A stretch of 64,000 bases of DNA from Hormiphora californensis. Taxonomy: Eukaryota > Animalia > Ctenophora. The translations under genes and the position numbers were made by a program. The number at the start of each line of letters is the position of its first letter. Positions within the stretch are counted from its first letter, which is position 1. The stretch covers positions 1,798,001-1,862,000 of the forward strand of contig CM035357.1 in assembly GCA_020137815.1 (NCBI GenBank), read 5' to 3'. Below are positions 47,788 to 63,618 of the stretch, piece by piece. A model generated the notes under the pieces. That model was not told the DNA's origin. It saw only the letters and a list, made by a program, of their open reading frames with translations, and searched no databases.

Positions 47788-50010
47788 CTACAGCTCTGCT
47801 TTGTTTAGAGGGTTATACGGACACTTATGGCACGCTCGTTTCTGCCTCAACTCTCTCATCCCCTTCCGCACCTCAATCTTTCCGTACTGCTTCTCCGCAT
47901 ACCTTCCAAACAACCGGTAATAGTAACAGTAAACATCAGAAGGACGGAGCTCAGTCCGGATGAAATGCCGCCCATTTTCTGATATGATGTGGGCTAGGTG
48001 GTCGTTCTCAGCGGCCCAGTTGATCCGTTGGATCAGGTTATTAAGGTTGTGGTTGAAGGGGATGTAGTGGACCCAGGGTTCGATATCAGCGTAGAAATGC
48101 TCATAGAAGAAGGAGTCCTGTGGAAATACAATATGTGTGTTAGGTGTTTGGAATCGGAAATGTGATGAGAGCTAGCTCAAAATTTGAAATTCAATTCTGT
48201 AAAAAATAAATCCTGAAGATTTAGTTTCCCAGTACCTGTTTAAAAAGTACTGCAGGGCCAGCCATTATGAATGGAACCCGTGTAGCAGCAGCCATCCCAT
48301 CAAGTGACAACTGATACTTGTACTCGAAGAAGTCGTTGAACGGAATCCTGGAGGCATGCTCTCCATACATACTGGGCACATGAGAAAAAAACAGGGACTG
48401 AGTCAACTTAGCATCAATCTTATCTGGGTAACTCCTGGATAGCCTACACAGATCAAGCCTCTGTTCCCTGGAATCTCGACCTCTCCAAAACCCAATCGGA
48501 ACCTTCTCAGACCACTCTGGACCGACTGTCCCCGCTTGGAGTCTCTGTAGATCAAGATCGGATTTGTGGAGCGACTTCTGGATACTGTCAGTCAGCTCGT
48601 AACTGGGCAGGGCAATGTCCGCTGTATCTCGGGATCCTCCGAATGAGAACACAGGGATTGGGAGTCGCGTTGTCTTGACGATGGGCTTATCCCGGAAGTT
48701 GACGAAGAATTCCATGTCGGGAAAGGACACTTTGCCCATCAGGGATAGGAGCATGGATTCAAACTTAACATTTAGGCCACTGTGTTCACCTGGGAAGAAT
48801 TGTGGAGGTTAAGCTGCTCAGTACATAAATACATAGTATACACTGTTGTAATGGTGTAGCTGGGTAATTTTATACACGTCTGTCACAATTGTGTGACAAC
48901 TAAATATTTCCCTTGAATTACCAGGGTATTTTCTCCATACCATCTCCTATAACGTTGTTCTCTCACCTATTTCCTTGCTGTAGACCTGGTTGTTCAAGAT
49001 AACGTAGTGACCCAGATTGTAGTGGGTATCAAACTTCCTGTTCACTTGTGCATCTAGGTCAACTACTGAGATATCCGGGAATTGCTCCAGGTCCAAGTCA
49101 ATCTGATAGAATGGTGGGGGGGTATGTTAGCTGGACTTAAAACTTATGTACAACAAGAAAAAGTAGAGAGAAGGAGAGAATTTTTACTCCAACTTTATTG
49201 AACTTCTGTCTTTGGATTGCCGTGTCTGAGAAATAGGCTAATAATCGAGTGATCTATAGTCTTTTTACCGGAGAAGTAGACGTTTTATGATTTACATTTC
49301 ATGGGTATATTACCGGAGAAGTAGACGTTTTACATTTCAGTGGTATATTATACCTGGGTGTAATTTGTTTTGCATTCCATCATCTCAGTCCACTTTGCAG
49401 CGTTCCTCTCCGCACACCCACACGACTCGTGGAAAATGGGACCTTGAAGGGTGTAGGGAGAGTTCGCCACTTGAGCTCCGTTCTCCAGCTTTACCTCGAT
49501 TTCCAGGTCATCAACCTGTGGGATATAGGGGTTAAATTGACAATATCATAGGTATTGGGTAGGGGCCAAATTGATATTTGATATGCAATTAGAAAGGACC
49601 TAAGTCCTAAAACCCCTGATTTGAACTCCGAATCCAGTTACCTCTTCAAACAACCTAAACCTGGCCAGGTACACACCGTCCTCTCTGTCCACAATCTCGC
49701 TCCACACCCTCACCACATGTTTCCCTCCATCCTTCCTGACCTCCATCTTGAACTTATTCCCCACGGATACCGTGAAATTCTGCCCATTTGAGTCCACCGC
49801 CTGGATGTAGAAATACCTGACGGGCATGTGGAAGGCTGGATCCAACCCGGGACCCCAGACTTTACTGTGCTTAGGGCAGAGACTCCGTGTGGCGGTTGCG
49901 CCCCCGAGGGACATTTGGGGTTGCCCGCCGAGATTTCCATCGAAGGCTATTTCTGTTGTCTGGGTGAGGCCCAGGAGAGGGATGAGTAAACACGTAACAA
50001 GGGGACACAT
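47788..50010 (-). CDS. KDELC1: Protein O-glucosyltransferase 2/3 (KDELC; filamin repeat plus CAP10 domain)
   Basis: Signal peptide, VWGPGL...PVRYFYIQAVD, PDMEFFVNFRDKP, FWRGRDSREQRL, FFEYKYQLSLDG, DSFFYEHFY...PWVHYIP, C-terminal KAEL*. Confidence 0.92.
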
Positions 50011-50296
50011 GATGCAAACTGAGGTTGGGGAGAGAGAGAAAGAGAGAGGGAGAGAGAGAGGGAGAGAGAGAGAGAGGGGGAGTGAGTGAGAAAGAGAGAG
50101 GGAGAAAGAGAGATCTTATGTATTGGAGCTGTACACGGCGTTTGGTGAGGTGTGTGCGTGTATCTGGCTATGTGTAATAGCGTGTGTGTGTGATTCAAGA
50201 GCTTCATGTGACCCTTGTCAGCGCTAATATCCAATCTACCAGCTACATTTTACAAGAACAATGAATGAATAAAATTTTACCTGTTTTTCTAGTAGG

Positions 50297-52885
50297 ATGA
50301 TTTGTACTCGGGCACTGCTAGGTTCGGCCAGGAAGTCCCTTCTGACTAGTACCACAAGGCAGTCCCTCCTGGAGAAGATTCAACCATTTAGAAACTTCGC
50401 AACACAACAGACTCGTGAGTAATATTCAGTGGGCTTTGTATTTTATACAAGAAATCGTTTCCCCAACATTCAACAATGAATATTAACCCTCCGGAATTTG
50501 TCTTGAAAAGCACACATTGTTCCCAGTTTTGGTGTTTTAAAACCCTTCCCCTGTTCAGAGAAAGGGGCGAGAAAGCAGGCTGAAGAGAAGAGAATACTAC
50601 TGTACCAACGAAACAATTACAAGAGAGATTTGAGGTTCAATAAATTCGCTGGATTCTGCATCTGGGGACCAGGTAAAACTATCACTGTATTATTCTCATA
50701 ACTGACCTAGACCACTGTTTAGGCTTTAGGGACAGGGTCTAATCGTTCCTGAAACACGAGTTTCCTGAAACACGAGTTTCCGCTTTTTTATACTCATATC
50801 ATCTAACTCGGCTGTCCCTTTTTATGATCCCCTTCTTCTCTTAGTCTTCTCGGATCATTATTGTTGCACTTATAACACTCGACCTTCGGTCTCGTGTTAT
50901 AAGTTTTCAGGTACAACTTATAGGCATAATAAAATCCTACACTGTATTATTGTCATATCTGACCTAGATCACTTTTTAGGTACAGGGACCATGATACGTC
51001 CACTCTGAAAATAAACCCGAGTTTCTGGTTGTTCACTCTCAGATCTAACTCAGCTGTCCTGCTCATTTTATAACCCTCGGGGGTTATCTAAATTCTAGCC
51101 CCATTCAGGAGTGTTCACGGTGTCCCTTTTTATGATTACCAGTAACCGACCGAATCAGGAAATACTGGCCCCTGATTGGCTGATAACCAGTCACGTGACC
51201 TAAATAACTTGTTCTGATTGCTTGTTTACTTGTTTCGGTAGGTTCCTGATGACCCCCTTCCTCTCGTTCCAGGAGTGTTCACGGTTATAAACCTGTTGGA
51301 TCTGGGTAGAAACTACGCCAAAGTTCCCCTCTTCCAGCAGGCCTCACTTGTTGTCTGTGCCGCTGGTTGGTTTGCTGGGGCCATACTCATCTGGAAAAAA
51401 CAGGTACACAGTAAGAGAAATTACGAGAGAGCTCAATTGTCGGCGTGAGAGCGGTAGAAAGCAGTAGAAAAGAAAGGGAAGAAATTTAGAAGTTAGATAC
51501 TGGAAAGTGGATAGAATAATTCTAGAATGATTCTAGAAAAAAAAAGATTATTTTCATAGAATTGTTCGGTACGATTTGAGATGACAGGGGGTCTACCAAC
51601 CCTCTTGCCTAGCGAGTCTAACTAGTTATCTTCGGATTTAAAAACTGGTTTTCTTATAGGACAATAACTGGATCACCGTTTTTAAAACTTGTGCATTTTA
51701 ACAAATATAACTTTGTTTGTCGTAATGCCCTCAGCAATTCATACCTTTTATCTTCTCTCTATGACTGAATGTTATAATCTAACCCTTATTCTCCTTTATA
51801 TTTGTAAAATAGAGGGTCGAACAAGGCAAATTATAACAGCGTGTCAACTGCTAGTGGGAGACACTAGCGTGGTATGTGCAAAAAAATGTGTGCCACACCA
51901 ATTTCGTTTTTTCAAAAAACACGCAAGAAAAAGTTTTTCAAGATCAACTTTTCACGTTTTGGCTCATAACTCCTGTTTCTGATAAGATAAAGACTTCAAA
52001 CCTTCGCCATTCGATGGAGCTTGAAATTTCCTTTCCAACGGTATGCAAATGATTTCTGTAGCTCATCAGGAACCGGAGATATGATCACTTATGATCATAA
52101 CCGCGTAAGTTTCCTTCGGCATTATCATAATTGATCATATCTCCGGTTCCTGATGAGCTACAGAAATCGTTTGCATACCGTTGGAAAGGGAATTTCAAGC
52201 CCCATCGAATGGCGAAGGTTTGAAGTCTTTATCTTATCAGAAAAAGGAGTTATGAGCCAAAACGTGAAAAGTCAATCTTGAAAAACTTTTTCTTGCGTGT
52301 TTTTTGAAAAACGAAATTGGTGTGGCGCGCATTTTTTTGCGCATACCACGCTAGTGTCTCCCATGACTATGCAGGTAACAACACCACTAGTATATAACAA
52401 GTAATATAACAAGTGCGTGTTCAATTCAGGTACGGCAGCTCGAGTATTTCCCACTTAAGAACATGTTTGAGATAACAACGCTGAACTGGAGAGGAGCTCC
52501 CGTGGTAGATCGAGCTAAACTGGGGGATGTACTTTATAGGGATACCAATGAACGACAAAATAGTGAGTTTCATCATGAGACAAAATAGTGAGTTTGAGAG
52601 ACCATGATTTATGACACAAAATAGTGAGTTTGAAAGGATTTAGGAGATAAAATTGTGAGACTAAAACATGGAAATTGGAATCAGATGTACAATGATATCA
52701 TCATGTACATTTGGGCCATTATACAACATTGACAACAAATCGTGATTCAATATTCCCATTTAATTTCCATTTAATTTCCAGGGTTGATTCTGCAAGTAAT
52801 GGACAGGGATTTTGTTATACAAAAAGATAAGGGTGTTTTGCCGAATGAAGAGACTCTATACAAGCTGACGGGACGAAGAAGTTGA
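50297..52885 (+). CDS. TMEM223/TMEM70/TMEM186-family mitochondrial membrane protein (paralog A), 5 exons
   Basis: Arg/Ser/Leu-rich presequence, ILLYQRN, two hydrophobic segments, KQVRQLEY...FEITT, LILQV...KDKGVLPNEETLYKLTG, recalling the TMEM223 C-terminus. Confidence 0.7.
51855..52343. mobile_element. About 490-bp fold-back element in an intron of paralog A
   Basis: tgggagacactagcgtggtatg...cataccacgctagtgtctccca, nearly fully palindromic. Confidence 0.85.
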
Positions 52886-53020
52886 ATTTATATTTGTTAC
52901 GAAAGTTTTGTAATAATTTTGTTTTCCGTGATTTTGGGGGCAAAACTATTTAGTAGTTTCATTACATTACAAATTTCAATGATGAATTTAACACTAATCC
53001 CATTTTCTATGTTAGTCACC

Positions 53021-53554
53021 ATGGTTACAGTCCGGGGTAAACAGCGAAACAATCGACGTGGCAGGATCACCAAGACAACAGCGGGGAAAAGCCGGAAAAA
53101 GGACTACCAAAAAAAGCACAAAGTTATCATCAAAAATGAGTTAATTCGGAAAAACTGGGACAAATCCAAGACCATGAAAGAGAACTTTGCGGCGCTTGGT
53201 CTTGCTTCAGACGTGAACGAGGTTTACCGCACCACCCACCACAAGAGAGCCAAGGATGATGAAGTTGAAGAGGGGGACGTCGCTGAATACCAAGCCATGG
53301 TTGAGACAGATGTTGTAAAACAGATGGAATCGGAGTGCAAGAGTGGGGCCGGACCGGTTATCAGACATTACTCTCCCAATGAGTGTGCGCTGTGGGAGGG
53401 TCTGGTTAAGGATCATGGGGAGGATTACAAGGCGATGGCAAGGGATAAGAGGAACACTCTCCAGCATACACCGAAACAGATAAAGAGGAAGATTGAGGGG
53501 TATTTGAAGTTTAAAAGTGCAGAAGGGAGGACCAAAATGGGCTGTGTCGGGTGA
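53021..53554 (+). CDS. NOP16: Nucleolar protein 16, single exon
   Basis: IRKNWDKSKTMKENFAALGL and HGEDYKAMARDKRNTLQHTPKQIKRKI; ATG taken at 53021, behind an acceptor. Confidence 0.93.
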   Translation: MVTVRGKQRNNRRGRITKTTAGKSRKKDYQKKHKVIIKNELIRKNWDKSKTMKENFAALGLASDVNEVYRTTHHKRAKDDEVEEGDVAEYQAMVETDVVKQMESECKSGAGPVIRHYSPNECALWEGLVKDHGEDYKAMARDKRNTLQHTPKQIKRKIEGYLKFKSAEGRTKMGCVG

Positions 53555-53895
53555 TCTCGCAGGGACCATGTTTTTATTCTTTAGAGTGTGTGTTTCGCAG
53601 CAGTTTAACCAGTGACTAAATTATTATTTTATTCAAACCAGCAACTCACGTGTTTTATGTTTGATTTTCGACAATCCTCCCTGGCCCCCTTATCCTTCTG
53701 TATGGCGGCGGCAGACCCCGATTTGCGCTCAGAGGGGGGTCTGCGGCGCCAGACGGTTATCCTTCAAGTTAAGTCCCAGACGGGCTTCCCTGATTGACGA
53801 ATACCCCTTCCTTTGCCAACCTCTTCGTTTTTCCCCAACTTCCTCATTAAATGATTATAACCCCTCTCTTTCAACAGTTTTCGAGAACTATAATC

Positions 53896-55328
53896 ATGAC
53901 GATGGTGTATTGCAAGTTGAGGGCTGCTGATGGACTCAGGGAGATCCTGAGACGGCGCTGTCTCTTCAGATCTCTCTCAGTCAGTGCTCAGAACTCCGGA
54001 CCAGCACAACCTGCTCAACCAAGACAAACAGCAGCTAAATCGTTAGGTAATTGGACAATGACTTAAACAAAGCGTACTTCAAAATCAAAATGAAACGGTA
54101 GAATATGGGAATCATCTTTAAAAACAGTTTCGTCCTTGCAGGTAAAAAGTCGGTAACTTTATACGAGAGGGACGACCCTTCGAGGAAGTTTTTCTTTAGA
54201 ATGTTCTTTATTCCCGCCCCTCTGGCCCTTTTACCAAAGGTAATTTCTCTTTCTCACATTATATCATGTCCCCCAAACTCGCCCCGTACTTCTTTTTTTT
54301 CATGATACACTTGATTGATGCCATTATTTCGTTACATTTATTTCCTCCACATTATCAATCACTCCATGACTTCCCTGGTGAACCTGCTGTTTCTACTTCT
54401 GCTCTTTATCTCCATCGGTATCTACTATACCTCTTTCTCTGTCCCATCTCTAGACTCTACCCCCACTACTCCCCCAGTCCGTTCATCGGTCTCTACCCCT
54501 TACATGGCTCCCCATCTCTACCCCACTACTCCCTCAGTTTATTCCCTGGTACTATGACATTATTAATGTGACAATGTCAAAGAGTGGAGCGGGACTGTTC
54601 TGGTTCACCTTCGGAACGCCCTTTCTTGTGTACGCTGGGCTCTATGCGTTTACAGTTATCAGCGCACTTAGGTACATTTTGTGAGGAAAAGTAAATGAGA
54701 TTGCTGTACTAAGTCTAAGATAAAAAACGATTATAATTTATAGGTATAGCACGCTATAGCGGTAGTAGTACTTTAAATGTCGGTATATCTTACGAAACTG
54801 GTTTATTATTAGCTTCTTGAATTGAAGGTTTACTCTTTCTTAGGTCACCCCGAAAGGTTGAGCTAGTCAAGACGCCAGAGGAGGGTTTGAGATTGCGGAT
54901 GCATGTCATGTCCTGGCCAGGAAGGTTGACTACAAAAGATCTGGATCCAGGCGCCATGTTCCTCGCTGTGGACAACAAAAGTAAGTTGTGTCTTGAGAGC
55001 CGCACAAAATTAAGTTGTGACAAAGCGGCCCGGCTCGGACAAAGTATTATAATTCATTGATCCAATTAGTATCTTTGAGTGGGCAGCTTTTTGTATCCTC
55101 GCTCTAGCGTCGTTAGCCGTTTCCACTTCTCGTCATGATAAAGCAGTTCGTATTTTGGTCGGAGTTCATTGAATTACCACTCTCTCTCCTTCAGAAATCT
55201 GCAGTCTGGGACACAATCTTCTTTTTTGGAACTACACGTGGGATAAGAAGTATGGGAAGATAAAAAATGCCCACATTCTGACCAAGATAGTTGGCTCGGA
55301 GCCAAGGAACAAGAAAAAGGGCGAATAA
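53896..55328 (+). CDS. TMEM223/70/186-family protein (paralog B), 5 exons
   Basis: Presequence (LRRRCLFRSLSVS), VTLYERD, two hydrophobic segments, RSPRKVEL, WDKKYGKIKNAHILTKIVG. Confidence 0.65.
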
Positions 55329-55487
55329 AACAATCAGCTCTGTGTACGAACTTTTGGGGTTTTTCGATTTGTTATGTAAATTATTGACTTTCATATTCAT
55401 TCGACATGCAAAATGCAGTATTAAAGAATGTTAACGGAAGGACAAGGTACCAAAATATAAAATTCTAACGACCCATCTTCCCCAGTC

Positions 55488-56994
55488 ATGATTTGTCTCC
55501 GAGTTCTCCGGGAATCATCCTATCGTGTTGCAGGCCATTTCACCCGTCGCTTGCTCTCCTCTGAGGCCTACCACAAGGCGAACAGAGTGACACTTTACAC
55601 AGTGTCGTGTGACCTCGGTCGGTGGTATTCTGTTATAGGGATTTGTGCCACTGGAGTCGCTGCATCAGGGATTGTGATTGGTCAAAAGCTCATATCATGT
55701 TAGTACGATATAACAATGTGCAAAAGCTGTCTGGCGGCGCCCACCCGATCTGAGCGCACTTTCACACAATTTGAAAAACAAAACGGCTTAGGCGGCGCCA
55801 GACAGCAGAAAAATATGTACAGTCGGACCCCGATTTAACGGCACCCTCGGGGGAAAGGATTTTGTCCGTTAAATCGGGGTGTCCGCTAAATCGGGGTCAA
55901 ATAATGTTAATTTTCCAAATCGGGGGAAGATTATGCTGCCGTTAAATCGGGGTGCCGCTAAATCGGGGGCCGTTAAATCGGGGTCCGACTGTACTTGGAA
56001 TCACATTTTTATTTTCATATTCTACATTTCTATCGCCAACACGTATCTCCCAGTGTATGATACTGGTGACGTGAGACTCCGTTGGGGATTTATTGGAGTT
56101 GCCACTGTGGCCATCGTAATGCTGAACATCATGGCTAGAAGGTACGAACTAGTCATCAATATCATTTTCAAAAGATAATGACTCATCATCTTTTAAAGAT
56201 GATAGTAATCACATAATCATGTGTCGATGTCCCTCCTGCGCTGTACTCTCTCGTCATTTCGTGCACGCTACGTCTTTTGTTAGGGATGGGGATGTTCGGG
56301 ATGGGGGCGTACGTGCCTTGCCCAACACTTGGTGGCGCCGTCACCTCTCTTACAACGGGCGAGTTGTAAGGGTGACCGTGTCACCAAGCCCAACACTAAC
56401 ACGGTCGCTTGTAGTGGGAAAACGGTAATGGAAAACGAAAGATACAGTAAGACGACGCGCAACCGTGACCAATCAGGGAGCTAGTACGTGCTGACACATG
56501 AACTTTTTGCCACACGTTATGCACCGTGCGCGGCTCCTTACTGTATTTTCATTACGGTAATTTGACTACAAGCAGCACTGTAACAATTTAATTATCCCGC
56601 AGGTTAGTGTTAAGTCTACACTACAGCAAATCAAGGCAGATGCTGCAGCTGCGAAGATTGGGGGTTCTGGGATTCAACAACGTTAGAGAAATGAAACCGG
56701 GGACAGCTAAAATTGTATTTAACTCAAAAAGTAAGTCACATTATACTGCAAAGTTGTGGAATTGTATATGTATGCTTACACTCCGTCTTTTATATTGACC
56801 CGTTCGTCTTCCACACAACTTAGCCTGTTACTTCCACAAAATGTTTTGTATTTAAATTCCTCCTTTCAGGTAACCAATTGGAAGTGTCACACGAATCTCT
56901 GGGTAGCTCTCCAAGTATAATATTTGTGAACTGGGGTACTGTTGAGAACGAACAAGCTTATCATAAACTGTTTGCTATTGTGGACGAGAAGTGA
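55488..56994 (+). CDS. TMEM223/70/186-family protein (paralog C), 4 exons
   Basis: Presequence (FTRRLLSS), VTLYT, two hydrophobic segments with LRWG, RRLVLSLHY...LQL, WGTVENEQAYHKLF. Confidence 0.65.
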
Positions 56995-57142
56995 AAATTA
57001 GGGATTTTGTATACTTTTGTGTGAGTTGAAATATGATTCGAGCTTTTGGTGATTTTGCAATTTGCAAGAAAATTTTTACCCCAATTTTTTCATGTCATTG
57101 TTTTAATAATCTCCACTCTAGCTCCTATATATTTTACAGCCC

Positions 57143-58310
57143 ATGTCAAAAAGAAAGCAGCCCGCCAGATCAGCCAAATCCAATGGCACTGTCAATGAAG
57201 TGCTCGAGATGGACGCTAAAGAGGTTGAATCTGTTGTCCCGAGGCCCTTTATAAAAACTGAACCCATCATAGTTAACCTCCCAATGGTGAAAATGGAACC
57301 GTTAGATGGGGGATTTCTGGACAGCTCCTTTTCTCGGATGATATGCCGTTGTGAATGGTGCGGACATCAAAACATGGGACCTCGGGGTGTGGAGATAGCC
57401 GTCCAAACTGAGCCAACTATAACTCTTGAAGAGGAAACCCAGACCGTGAAAGTGGCTGCTGATTTGGAGTTCTTAGAAAGGCCCTCAGACGTTGAAATCA
57501 TAGATGAGAAGCCCCAAATTGAGAATTCAGAAAAGCCGCCAGAAGTTAACTACAGTGAAGAAATGCCAGAGATTTGCGATGGTGAAGAAGAAAAGCCAGT
57601 GATTGAGGAATTGAATTCTAAAACTTCTGAGATAATCTTACCTCTGGCACCTCCATCCTTCCCACAAAAAGGTAATAACGGTCAAGAAGTATTTCAAATT
57701 AGTTGTGTGTGTGTGTTTTATTTTCCTCTTCTTTCGTAACACTGTTTTATTTTCAGGGAAAGTCAATGTGCGTTTCTCAGGGAAAGACTCTCAGAAGAAA
57801 GCCAACTTGATCCAGGAAAAGAAGAATGTGGTCCAAAAGAAGGAGAATGTGATCCAGAAGGAGAGTGTGATCCAGGAAAAGAAGAATGTGCTACCATCTA
57901 CAAAACGGATCAGGAGCCACCAGGACTGCGCTACTAAAGCCAAGCAAGGGAATGAGATATCCTGTTCCTCCTCGAGTTATATAAATCCTGTGGGGAAACA
58001 TAGAGAGAACTACCGTATAGATGTGCTCGTGCCTTGTGCTGTTGCACCACCCCCGCGCCCCCCAACAATACAACTCGTGCCAAGAAGGAGGGTCTCTGAT
58101 GATGGAAGGATCCACAAATGTGATGAGTGTGGAGCGAGATTTGCTTACCCGAGTACCTTGGTTTATCATAAGAAGATCCATACGGGGGAACGAGGTGAAT
58201 CAGAATACGAGAGCAGGAATAATTGGAGAAAGAGAAAGAAAAATGAAAGAGAGATGAGTAAGACAGAAAGAAATCAGAGAACTTATTCCCAACAGACTGA
58301 GTACATGTGA
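57143..58310 (+). CDS. Protein with one C2H2 zinc finger; exons 57143-57671 and 57757-58310
   Basis: HKCDECGARFAYPSTLVYHKKIHTGER; IKTEP and VKMEP SUMO-type motifs; in-frame GT-AG intron; 3' end uncertain. Confidence 0.75.
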
Positions 58311-58545
58311 AGAACCACAGTTATCATAAACCGTTTTTAAATCCTGTTTCTATCAAATCATGTTTTATAATCATTATTGACATTGTATTAAATCCAAGTA
58401 CATTATATTTCTATTTTACATTAATTTATTCAATTTCCTGTCCGAATTTGTTGATGTCAACCATGGTCCAGCTGTAGACCTAAAGAATCTATCTATCTAG
58501 AATCTAGAAGAATCTAGTATACATAATATATGATTTCTAGATCAC

Positions 58546-60895
58546 ATGTTACAAAACCTGATAGTTCGTTACCGGAATATCCTTCAATCACGATGTCATA
58601 ACCTCTCCATTGTTCCAGCAAGACGGTGGTTGTCTAGCACTACAAAACAAGGTAGACAATAATTCCTCTAACTATAAATACCATTTCTAGCTATGATGAT
58701 TTTTGTCATATACCCCTTTTTGTCATATACCCCTTTTTGTCATATACCCCTTTTTGTCATATACCCCTTTCTTCCAATTCGTAATATATACCTAGTCTCT
58801 GCCTTAACTAAAACCAAGATTACTTCCCCAATAACTAAATACTGTTTACTACTACTGCTACCAAGATTACTTCCCCAATAACTAAATACTGTTTACTTCC
58901 ACAATATAACTTTACTACTACTGCAGGGGTTTCCAAATATGGTATTGTGGTGTACGATAATGGGGGAAGTCTAAACCAGGCCAGAATGGCTCGCATCGGG
59001 GCTCTCTTTATGGTCTTTACTACACCCATCTGTCTGATTGCTGGATATGTTGATACTATTTTGAGTAATCCAAATGAAGAGGATCCTTCTATGAAGGTTA
59101 GTGTTGCTAGGTGACATGGTGGTGTTGTGTTGCTTTGCGGGTCTGAGTTGAACTGAATACTCCGAGTTAGCTATATAAAATCAAAGCAAGCTCTACCACA
59201 ATATGTTTCAAAATGTGTTTCAATATCATCGTGTTTCAGGAAATGATGAGGTGGACACTCATCACTCTTACCCTGACAACTGTTGCCGTGAAGTTTAGTC
59301 AGAATACCTGTAGGAAGACACTTACAACCCTCTACTTCAACAAAGCTGAGGGAAAGATCTATCTGGATGCGTTTAGGGGCTGGTTTTGTAAGCCTAAAAT
59401 GTATGGCCCCTACACTCCCTCTATTGGTTAGTTTGTAAACCTAAACTGTATGGCCCCTATTCTCCCTCTATTGGTTAGTTTGTAAACCTAAACTGTATGG
59501 CCCCTACTCTCCCTCTATTGGTTAGTTTGTAAACCTAAAATGTATGGCCCCTACTCTCCCTCTATTGGTTAGTTTGTAAACCTAAAATGTATGGCCCCTA
59601 CTCTCCCTCTATTGGTTAGTTTGTAAACCTAAAATGTATGGCCCCTACTCTCCCTCTATTGGTTAGTTTGTAAACCTAAAATGTATGGCCCCTACTCTCC
59701 CTCTATTGGTTAGTTTGTAAACCTAAACTGTATGGCCCCTACACTCCCTCTATTGGTTAGTTTGTAAACCTAAAATGTATGGCCCCTACACTCCTTCTAT
59801 TGGTTAGTTTGTAAATCTAAAATGTATGGCCCCTACTCTCCCTCTATTGGTTAGTTTGTAAACCTAAAATGTATGGCCCCTACACTCCTTCTATTGGTTA
59901 GTTTGTAAACCTAAAATGTATGGCCCCTACTCTCCCTCTATTGGTTAGTTTGTAAACCTAAAATGTATGGCCCCTACTCTCCCTCTATTGGTTAGTTTGT
60001 AAACCTAAAATGTATGGCCCCTACTCTCCCTCTATTGGTTAGTTTGTAAACCTAAAATGTATGGCCCCTACTCTCCCTCTATTGGTTAGTTTGTAAATCT
60101 AAACTGTATGGCCCCTACACTCCCTCTATTGGTTAGTTTGTAAACCTAAAATGTATGGCCCCTACTCTCCCTCTATTGGTTAGTTTGTAAACCTAAAATG
60201 TATGGCCCCTACACACCCTCTATTGGTTAGTTTGTAAACCTAAAATGTATGGCCCCTACTATCCCTTGTTGTTGGCAATGATCACCAATTTTTTGTCGTG
60301 ATAAATTATGTTTCCTCGGTCCCCAGTCCCCTTCCAGTGGATGGCATCCACCACATTCCCATCCATCACATAATTCAGCCGGACCCCCATTTACTGGGTT
60401 GCTCAAGGAAAAGGGTTTTGCCCAGTAAATCTGGGTTCAACTGTATCCACCTCTGATTCTGAATTATTACTTTCTATCTATTTCAGCATACAGAACGTTA
60501 GAAACTCGGAGAGAGGGAAATGGTTTTCGCACTTACAGTAAGTTAAAAACAGAGCCATCTCCAAACAACATTTATGTTATAATCATGTTTTACAAACGTC
60601 AAACAGTTATCTATATAAATCGTTATCAAAACATCAAAAACTTTTTTTTTCAGATCAGCTAATTTTCGAGCCACATGTCATGTCGGCCCGGTTTCTCTCT
60701 CAAGAGGAAGTTTATGAACACAAAATCAATAAAAACATTGAAGTTGAGGCATCGGACATGGGAAACAAGAGCTTTGAAATCAGGGAGGAGTTGATCACGG
60801 AATACACACTGTGGAGAAAGTTGTTCAAGATAAAAGAAGAGGAAAGTAATGATAAGGAGGCCGAGGGGAAGGCTAAGAGAAAGATATATGATTGA
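58546..60895 (+). CDS. TMEM70/186-family protein (paralog D), 5 exons
   Basis: Presequence (ARRWLSS), GIVVYDNGGSL...R, two hydrophobic segments, KTLTTLYFNKAEGKIYL, FRTY...LIFEP. Confidence 0.62.
59386..60262 (+). repeat. 47-nt tandem array of exon end plus donor (18 copies of ctattg|gttagt)
   Basis: Exact 47-nt period from 59421 to 60220. Confidence 0.97.
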
Positions 60896-60949: not shown

Positions 60950-63618
60950 TTATCCCAATTCGCCCCCGAACCCCCAAACAGTACCTAATTAGTCCACTGC
61001 TACAGAATACAGACCATCAACCTTTTCCAATTTCCCCCAACAATCGCACCACAACTCTGCAATTTAAGAGTCCAAACTCTCTACACTTCTTGGGTCTCAA
61101 AAACACTCCACTCACACTTCTTGTGTCTCGAAAACACTCCACTCACACTTCTTGGGTCTCAAAAACACTCCACTCATTCACACTTCTTGGGTCTCAAAAA
61201 CACTCCACTCACACTTCTTGGGTCTCAAAAACACTCCACTCACACTTCTTGGGTCTCAAAAACACTCCATTCACACTTCTTGGGTCTCGAAAACACTCCA
61301 CTCACTAGCACCTTGGTAGTATGCTGCGAAGTTGCTGGGAGGATCCGGTCTAACACTCCACTCCTCCTCTATAGAGCTATTCTCGTCAAACAATACCACC
61401 TCCCCTGGTAGATAGTCCGCCCTGAACATGGGAAGAATGGTTTAGAATGTACATTGTGCGAAGTATGGTTTAGAATGTACAACGTGCGATGGTTTACATC
61501 TGTATCTGATAAGAGGTTGTCTATTTTGGATATTTGTCACTGCTCTGGATATATATCCTAGTAGTCCTTCACTAAGTACTGATCGATCAGTAGTGAAGGA
61601 TTATGATGTAAATCTTATGATTGGTATCCAAATTACACGATTAAAGAATGATCAACTCACGTTACAGTTCCTGCGTGAACTCCGGCCCCATCATCATCAT
61701 CATCCCCCTGGCTAGCTCCACTGACTGCTATCTCCATACTCCCGAAATCTTTACTCCGGATCAGTGCCGCTTTAGCAGCCCTCACCCCTGCCATCACCAC
61801 ACCGTGCTCTATCTTGGTTGGTGGTTGTTTGTCTCCATGGTAACCATGTTTGTCTCCATGGTAACCATGTTTGTCTCCATGGTAACCATGTTTGTCTCCA
61901 TGGTAACCGTGTGGTGGCAGGTTAGGTAGAGCTATCGCTTCCTCGTAGTGGTTTGTTTCTTTCCTTCGGAAGGTCCCTACCCCGGGCGACCCAGCTGATC
62001 CTATCTCCATCTTGGCAGCCCTAATTCTCATCCTCACAAAGAGTCCGGCTACCATGGCAACCACTGCGACAGAAAACAGTCCAAACATTCCACAGATCAG
62101 TGTGTTTTGTTGGCAGTACCCACAGTCGTCACCGGTACAGGGTGGCTCCGTGTCACCTGCCACAATGGCGTTGGAATTACCGTCTGATCCGCTGGTGTCG
62201 TTGTGACCTGTACCATGACACTCGGTGTAGGTTTCTCCCCCACACTCCAGGATGACGCTGGGAAGAGGACGATAGTGTTATTACAGTTGGACCCCGATTT
62301 ACCGGGGGGGGGGGGCTGACACTGGGAAGAGGGGAGAGTGTTATTACAGTTGGACCCCGACCCGGGGGGTAGTAAACAGGAGTGTTAATAGTAGTACTAA
62401 AAGTAAAAAGTTACTCTTACCCCCCACACTCCAGGATGACGCTGGGAAGAGGGGAGAGTGTTATTACAGTTGGACCCCGATTTACCGGGATCCTCGGGGG
62501 AAGCCATTTTGTAAATCGGGGGGTAGTAAACTGGAGTCTGGCAATTATTGTTGATCACCTCAAAGAAACTAAAATAAAAAGTTACTCTTACCGACATCCT
62601 TCCAATCCCTCTCCTAATTGTGACCATCCACACACTTCAATTGAAACACTTTCCTCGATACCTAGAGGTTTAGTTGTTGAAATTAGAAAATATCGTTCGG
62701 CCAATCACTATCATGGGCCTCAAAGGGTTAAAGCAATAAAACAAACGATGCAAATTGTAGGGAAAAGCCATCAGTGATGGACTGGTTTTCCCTAAAATTT
62801 GATGGTCCATCATATTATCCTGATAATTACCGTCGCAGGTACAGCTGTAATGACCATCATCCTCCTTTGATGCAGATTGAATCCACAGAGAACCGTTCTT
62901 CAGTATCTCCTAAAGATGATCACATTTACAAGGTTCAAACTGATTATCCATACTGTACCCGGCGCCATTCCGGGGATAAAAACGGAACGAAAGTTTCTAC
63001 CTCAAAGGCGATAAAGATATAAAATGTTGTTCTTAAAACTGAATCGATCTTACTGCAAAGGATGGTCGTGTTTTCCATTCAATGTCTCCCCTACAACCCT
63101 CCCCGCACGAAACCAGGGTCTGGTAACCCTCCGGGACGTAGACCGTGGTTTTTAGGTCTGAGACCACCTTTAGGATTTTAACCACTTTCTTCGCTATAGA
63201 GATAATATCGTAATGTTATTTCTTAAAGTGCCTGGGTAAAACACTAAGGAAAAACAGTCGGACCTCAATTTACCGGGATACACGGGGGAAGGCCGTTTCA
63301 CCCGGTAAATCGAGATCAGGCTGTGTCGCTAAAAATGATTTCGCTGGCACTAGTGGAGATCCTAAACCTATACAATCCCCTTCAGGAACCGACCGAATCA
63401 GGAAATACTGGTCCCTGATTGGCTGATAACCAGTCACGTGACCTAAATAACGAGTTCTGATTGGCTGTTTACTTGTTTCGGTCGGTTCCCTAGTCCCCTT
63501 ATATTTGGTATGATATTACTAAGCTTGTCATCTACCTACCTCCACAGCTGCAGCTATATTCCCCGTCGTCGGACCTTGTCAGCGCTTCAATCAGCAATGA
63601 TCTATCTGATTGTTGAAC
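60950..63618 (-). CDS. Ig-domain single-pass membrane protein, 3' part; 5' end lies beyond the window
   Basis: Exons SLLIEALTRSDDGEYSC; VYVPEGYQTLVSC...IEW; ILKNGSLWIQSASKEDDGHYSC; TM segment LICGMFGLFSVAVVAMVAGLFV then RMRIR; last exon tentative. Confidence 0.75.
61080..61306 (-). repeat. About 7 copies of a 31-nt unit starting with the donor gtgagt
   Basis: Plus strand cactccactcacacttcttgggtctcaaaaa abuts the exon end at about 61306. Confidence 0.9.

Follow-up and report, generated by a model that had tools for sequence, protein, structure and literature searches.

A compact run of six same-strand genes in the ctenophore Hormiphora californensis as a candidate spliced-leader operon

The stretch of DNA analyzed here—64 kb of the ctenophore Hormiphora californensis (C8:1798001-1862000), referred to as the window, in whose numbering all gene positions are given—carries six closely spaced genes, G1 to G6, on the plus strand at 50297-60895. 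An earlier note on this DNA had proposed that these genes form an operon, whose transcript is resolved by spliced-leader (SL) trans-splicing at an acceptor before every start codon. This reading is credible but unproven, and is weighed below against the alternative explanations of the same layout.

Gene content and boundaries of the cluster

The gene models were rebuilt from coordinates, with splice sites picked so that the frame stays open. All six turned out to be in frame with canonical GT-AG introns, which bears out the gene run described earlier: G1 (50297-52885, five exons, 199 amino acids), G2 (53021-53554, one exon, 177 amino acids), G3 (53896-55328, five exons, 217 amino acids), G4 (55488-56994, four exons, 183 amino acids), G5 (57143-58310, two exons, 360 amino acids), and G6 (58546-60895, five exons, 238 amino acids). 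The gaps from stop codon to ATG measure 135, 341, 159, 148, and 235 bp, exactly the values that had been claimed. By a local codon usage score, the exons of G1–G6 reach +0.13 per codon in the predicted frame versus −0.42 for the introns; this is consistent with real genes, in a test that is partly circular as the frames had been picked as open ones. The cluster holds one gene per 1.8 kb versus a genome mean of ~7.8 kb, the genome bearing 14,265 genes in 110.7 Mb (PMC8527503).

Both flanks of the cluster are occupied by the minus strand. Upstream lies a gene at 47791-50010 with its ATG at 50010, which encodes a signal peptide, a filamin repeat (PF00630, 1.4e-8), and a POGLUT/KDELC-like Glyco_transf_90 (GT90) domain (PF05686, 5.6e-36 and 2.7e-25). 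Downstream, open minus-strand segments at 61274-62400 are convergent with G6; no Pfam family matched them. Hence, the plus-strand run consists of exactly six genes and ends at G6. G1 stands head to head with the GT90/filamin gene, and the 286 bp between the two divergent ATGs (50011-50296) are a candidate bidirectional promoter and outron region. That this interval serves as a shared promoter region can reasonably be inferred from the head-to-head arrangement, while the CpG and GC profile gave no promoter signature in 50011-50296 or in any of the five spacers.

The spacers are AT-rich (GC 0.27–0.35) save for the one between G2 and G3. They run, all on the plus strand, from 52886 to 53020 between G1 and G2 (135 bp, GC 0.27), from 53555 to 53895 between G2 and G3 (341 bp, GC 0.46), from 55329 to 55487 between G3 and G4 (159 bp, with an AATAAA that overlaps the G3 stop codon), from 56995 to 57142 between G4 and G5 (148 bp, GC 0.30), and from 58311 to 58545 between G5 and G6 (235 bp, GC 0.28). 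The mobile element that had been noticed in the 341-bp spacer is indeed present as a dispersed palindromic repeat of ~57 nt (~53698-53754), of which the genome contains at least 40 copies. Measured from stop codon to acceptor, the distances are 130, 322, 156, 126–144, and 229 nt, which leaves little room for a 3′ untranslated region (UTR), an independent promoter, and a 5′ UTR.

The spliced genes were searched exon by exon with Pfam and BLAST. Four of the six genes—G1, G3, G4, and G6—are built alike: a basic first exon (6–9 arginines and lysines, 0–2 aspartates and glutamates) is followed by two central hydrophobic segments and a soluble tail. In G1, a basic presequence-like N-terminus precedes a hydrophobic core exon; in G3, the N-terminus is likewise presequence-like and the central exons are hydrophobic; G4 combines a presequence-like N-terminus with two hydrophobic segments, and so does G6, whose N-terminus is free of acidic residues. 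Hydrophobic 17-mers in the central exons of the four genes score 1.1–2.2, the last intron is a phase-1 intron in all of them, and the first intron is so in three of the four. It is this architecture that suggests a common ancestry of G1, G3, G4, and G6, as exon-level BLAST of the four among themselves yielded nothing significant.

With 183–238 amino acids, a presequence, a two-helix hairpin, and a C-terminal soluble part, these four proteins resemble mitochondrial assembly factors of the TMEM70/TMEM186/TMEM223 type (PF06979), and the C-terminus of G1 presumably resembles that of TMEM223. Unlike members of this family, however, their exons miss the family profile: PF06979 found no match in them at E up to 10, and none of the exons, taken one by one, matched anything in Pfam. 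When the complete genome was searched with PF06979 in six frames, only two other, intronless genes came up, at C5:173131 and C6:4776557, to which the exons of the four show no significant BLAST similarity either; a search with the gene on C6 led to two close orthologues. Exon 1 of G4 was compared with 1.84 billion representatives and found no real relative, two spurious repeat proteins being returned. A language model likens this exon to small subunits of the mitochondrial inner membrane (score 0.87), which is a lead only.

G2 encodes NOP16, a protein of ribosome biogenesis (Pfam Nop16, PF09420, E 2.7e-28, 100 bits versus a cut-off of 25), and is the sole gene of the six with a significant Pfam match. 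Ten NOP16 relatives with 62–77% identity carry PF09420 as well, and all of them align from the same methionine (MVTVRG), two bearing unrelated N-terminal extensions. The relatives P0005 and P0012 are encoded on genome contigs of 3.3 Mb and 261 kb, and others are on contigs of transcript size (0.8–0.95 kb). An identical copy of the G2 protein was sought in the protein collection and not found. As a side observation, the G1 stop codon lies in the NOP16 frame, and the 135-bp spacer contains no in-frame stop between the G1 TGA and the G2 ATG. Open, unrelated upstream extensions of 36–57 codons are also present in the NOP16 relatives P0003 and P0010, on contigs of 1.1–2.0 kb. The open frame from G1 to NOP16 is probably due to chance in T-rich sequence.

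The G5 product is acidic and has a single C2H2 zinc finger, for which zf-C2H2 (E 4.2e-4) and zf-H2C2_2 (E 5.4e-5) both stay under the Pfam curated cut-offs; a homologue search with its exon 1 found none. Overall, the cluster has a largely housekeeping content, with a gene of ribosome biogenesis and genes for membrane proteins of mitochondrial type. Retrocopies of the cluster were sought in the genome, where only its intronic repeats came up, and an Rfam search of the whole window returned zero families.

Several of the introns carry repeats. G1 intron 3 contains a palindromic element of ~512 bp (51852-52363) that resembles a miniature inverted-repeat transposable element, with 191-nt arms that are 96% complementary and dozens of genome copies of 81–96% identity. 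A repeat of ~189 bp in G4 intron 2 (56396-56584) has copies on other chromosomes that are 96–98% identical, and, hence, this insertion looks young. G6 intron 3 (59244-60389) is filled by 19 copies of a 47-bp unit; as the array begins at the exon 3 donor, every unit has a donor-like site. Past G6, the convergent interval bears a further tandem array at 61052-61342 (seven copies of a 31–35-bp unit).

Splice acceptors and the spliced leader

The acceptor strings quoted in the earlier note are all present before the six ATGs. For G1, the AG lies at 50294-50295, with an alternative at 50291-50292 (scores 4.3 and 2.3), and the first base after it is 50296 or 50293. The G2 acceptor (AG 53014-53015, first base 53016) is situated in the G1–G2 spacer. 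G3 has its AG at 53876-53877, 18 nt before the ATG (first base 53878), and G4 at 55484-55485, 2 nt before the ATG (first base 55486). G5 offers two sites, at 57138-57139 and 57120-57121, which are 3 and 21 nt before the ATG (first base 57140 or 57122), and the G6 acceptor at 58539-58540 is 5 nt before the ATG (first base 58541). All of these are on the plus strand. For each gene, the first ATG past the acceptor is the annotated one, and the 5′ UTR left before it is 1–21 nt long.

The strength of these sites was assessed with a weight matrix trained on the 16 internal acceptors of G1–G6, the internal sites themselves being scored leave-one-out. In the 21 nt that precede the ATG, the highest-scoring AG reaches 4.3, 0.6, 5.1, 5.9, 3.4, and 3.3 for G1 to G6, and the internal acceptors score 0.5–14.1 with a median of 7.4 (n = 16). 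Taken singly, the pre-ATG acceptors are only moderate and fall into the 79th–96th percentile of all AGs. Among all 2013 ATGs of the window, 23% reach a score of at least 0.6 and 12.5% one of at least 3.3; the chance that six of six ATGs bear such an acceptor amounts to ~1.6e-4.

The position of the acceptors is also reflected in the start codons. G2 has three in-frame upstream ATGs (52979, 52982, and 53009), all of which precede the acceptor at 53016. Since its NOP16 relatives align from the same methionine, trimming of the 5′ end at 53016 would explain the conserved start. Likewise, an upstream in-frame ATG of G3 at 53851 sits before the acceptor of that gene. The divergent minus-strand neighbour has an acceptor of its own—a CT tract followed by CAG, 8 nt before the ATG at 50010, with a score of 5.4—for which the (GA)n run at 50020-50114 provides the pyrimidine tract.

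In H. californensis, a spliced leader was found on at least 56% of the Iso-Seq reads, and a single leader family is known (PMC8527503); operons are not mentioned in that paper. The 3′ end of this leader reads ...AATTTGAG. Its 3′ 26-mer, as published, has 640 matches in the assembly versus 0 for the reversed control, in support of SL trans-splicing by this organism. The same 26 bases were not found within the 64-kb window with up to three mismatches. The leader is hence encoded outside the window, and any leader on the mRNAs of G1–G6 must come in trans. With the leader encoded elsewhere in the genome and absent from the window, trans-splicing at the acceptors of G1–G6 is likely, and the addition of the leader at these sites is the step of the proposal that we would predict with good confidence.

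The genomic copies of the leader are themselves heterogeneous. Of the ~640 copies of its 3′ end, only 83 exact ones are then followed by GT, and several of these GT-followed copies are grouped at C13:3,189,657-3,195,365. At five of six inspected loci, unrelated sequence follows the leader directly, and an ATG is often present only a few bases on. These loci resemble 5′ ends of mobile elements or mRNAs that were retro-copied with their leader more than they do SL RNA genes.

One precursor or six transcripts

In the operon reading, the bidirectional promoter region at 50011-50296 would drive a single polycistronic precursor of G1–G6. This precursor would then be cut into six mRNAs through 3′ end formation in each AT-rich spacer, and a leader of ~44 nt would be added at the acceptor 1–21 nt upstream of each ATG. 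Taken as a whole—a ctenophore operon with one promoter at 50011-50296, a six-cistron precursor, and a single leader, in which shared transcription might be the reason why four genes for mitochondrial membrane proteins, duplicated long ago, have stayed linked to NOP16 and a zinc-finger gene—we put the probability of this reading at about 0.4. For the single polycistronic transcript across G1–G6 in itself, the odds may come near to even, while still lying somewhat on the lower side.

An operon calls for at least two genes on the same strand that are separated by very little intergenic sequence, and for an organism that trans-splices with a leader encoded elsewhere; G1–G6 display the former and H. 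californensis the latter. In chaetognaths, the operational definition of an operon has been a distance between genes of less than 250 bp together with SL evidence (PMC12460157). From stop codon to ATG, four of the five gaps between G1 and G6 are under this distance, and the fifth (341 bp) would be so after subtraction of a 3′ UTR. As trans-splicing is the norm in this species, it is the spacing, strand, and cluster boundaries only that carry the operon reading. Since trans-splicing is the default and the neighbour shows the same layout, six genes that are transcribed one by one and trans-spliced would have such acceptors just as an operon would.

Several observations weigh against the operon. 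Up to 2021, operons had not been described from ctenophores (PMC7986045), and literature searches for ctenophore operons after 2021 found no report. One sequencing run with the same species label (contigs, guessed to be RNA) was compared with 49900-55899, i.e., the promoter region, G1–G3, and four acceptors, and matched only at a repeat fragment of G1 intron 2 (51149-51231); this run holds next to none of the sequence words of 52800-58800. No motif is common to the five spacers, which share k-mers no more than by chance, and their poly(A) signals are mostly noncanonical. Plausible donors within the G3–G4 (55376) and G5–G6 (58398) spacers give room for cis-spliced leader exons. TATA-like strings are located 20–40 nt upstream of several ATGs, e.g., TATAAA at 55456. 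More than 1,600 H. californensis genes host nested genes (PMC8527503), and, hence, promoters inside other transcription units are common. Finally, the layout of acceptor plus ATG is genome-wide and not operon-specific, as it is present at the nonclustered divergent neighbour.

The last three of these points also speak for the main rival, in which six genes are transcribed separately from promoters of their own, situated in the spacer or toward the 3′ end within the preceding gene, and a short outron is removed from each by SL trans-splicing—the default in this species (PMC8527503). The tight packing would then reflect genome compaction and old tandem duplication rather than co-transcription. 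In line with this, four of the six genes have one architecture, as tandem duplicates would, and the 341-bp spacer between G2 and G3 is richer in GC (0.46) and tolerates the insertion of a repeat. However, gaps of 135–159 bp would then need space for the 3′ UTR and poly(A) site of one gene as well as the promoter and outron of the next, and the spacers show no conspicuous promoter-type composition signal. Moreover, two unrelated genes stand among the four look-alikes, which remain adjacent even though their sequences have diverged past detectable similarity. That this adjacency was kept despite heavy rearrangement in the lineage (PMC8527503) suggests a constraint on linkage. Separate transcription thus appears as a serious, if tentative, alternative to the operon.

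A second alternative involves no leader: the sites before the ATGs would serve cis-splicing in the usual way and be joined to short untranslated first exons, located either in the spacers or in the upstream genes. Two spacers contain plausible donors, at 55376 (6.9) and 58398 (7.1). Together with a site at 53011 (5.9), these lie in the score range of true donors. On the other hand, no comparable donor is present upstream of G1 or in the G2–G3 and G4–G5 spacers (best scores 4.0–5.2), a first exon and its promoter would need to fit into 130–230 nt, and most mRNAs of the species bear the leader (PMC8527503); this alternative is improbable. As an aside on donors, a donor-like gag|GTGAAT at 58195 (score 4.9) is located just past the zinc-finger linker HTGER of G5. 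Spliced to the G6 acceptor (first base 58541), it would be in frame with the G6 ATG, and a G5–G6 fusion isoform would be possible on paper.

Least probable of all is that some of G1, G3, G4, and G6 are nonfunctional—decaying duplicates or over-fitted models, the operon then being shorter than six genes—since, for all the lack of Pfam matches, of significant similarity among the four, and of relatives of G4 exon 1, and for all that splice sites were picked to hold the frame open, the four have complete open reading frames, three to four canonical introns, the same architecture, and similar intron phases, with codon scores that are positive in frame versus negative in the introns.

Comparison with known operon systems

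SL trans-splicing is already known in ctenophores, and operons or polycistronic mRNAs would be new there. If the operon reading of G1–G6 is true, operons would be present in one of the earliest-branching animal lineages. This would bear on the question of whether operons emerge in every lineage that has a general leader, and on the regulation of compact ctenophore genomes.

The cluster shares with the SL2-type operons of Caenorhabditis elegans the same-strand genes at distances of a few hundred base pairs or less and the acceptor near the downstream ATG. In C. elegans operons, formation of the upstream 3′ end is coupled to downstream trans-splicing, and housekeeping and mitochondrial genes are enriched. 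Nematodes possess a dedicated SL2 leader and a U-rich element in the spacer. In contrast, G1–G6 belong to a species with one known leader family (PMC8527503), their spacers have no shared motif, and the processing of a G1–G6 transcript is a prediction.

In tunicates (Ciona, Oikopleura) and chaetognaths, whose operons are resolved by a general leader, one leader class serves operonic and monocistronic genes alike. Tunicate intercistronic regions are almost nil, whereas G1–G6 have roughly 130–320 nt from stop codon to acceptor. In chaetognaths, operons do without an operon-specific leader (PMC12460157). For both groups, polycistronic RNAs and SL junctions have been demonstrated, whereas for G1–G6 they are predicted. 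Finally, Hydra is a non-bilaterian in which SL trans-splicing occurs and a small number of operons have been described (PMC3273482); it differs from the present case in belonging to another phylum, in which leaders evolved independently.

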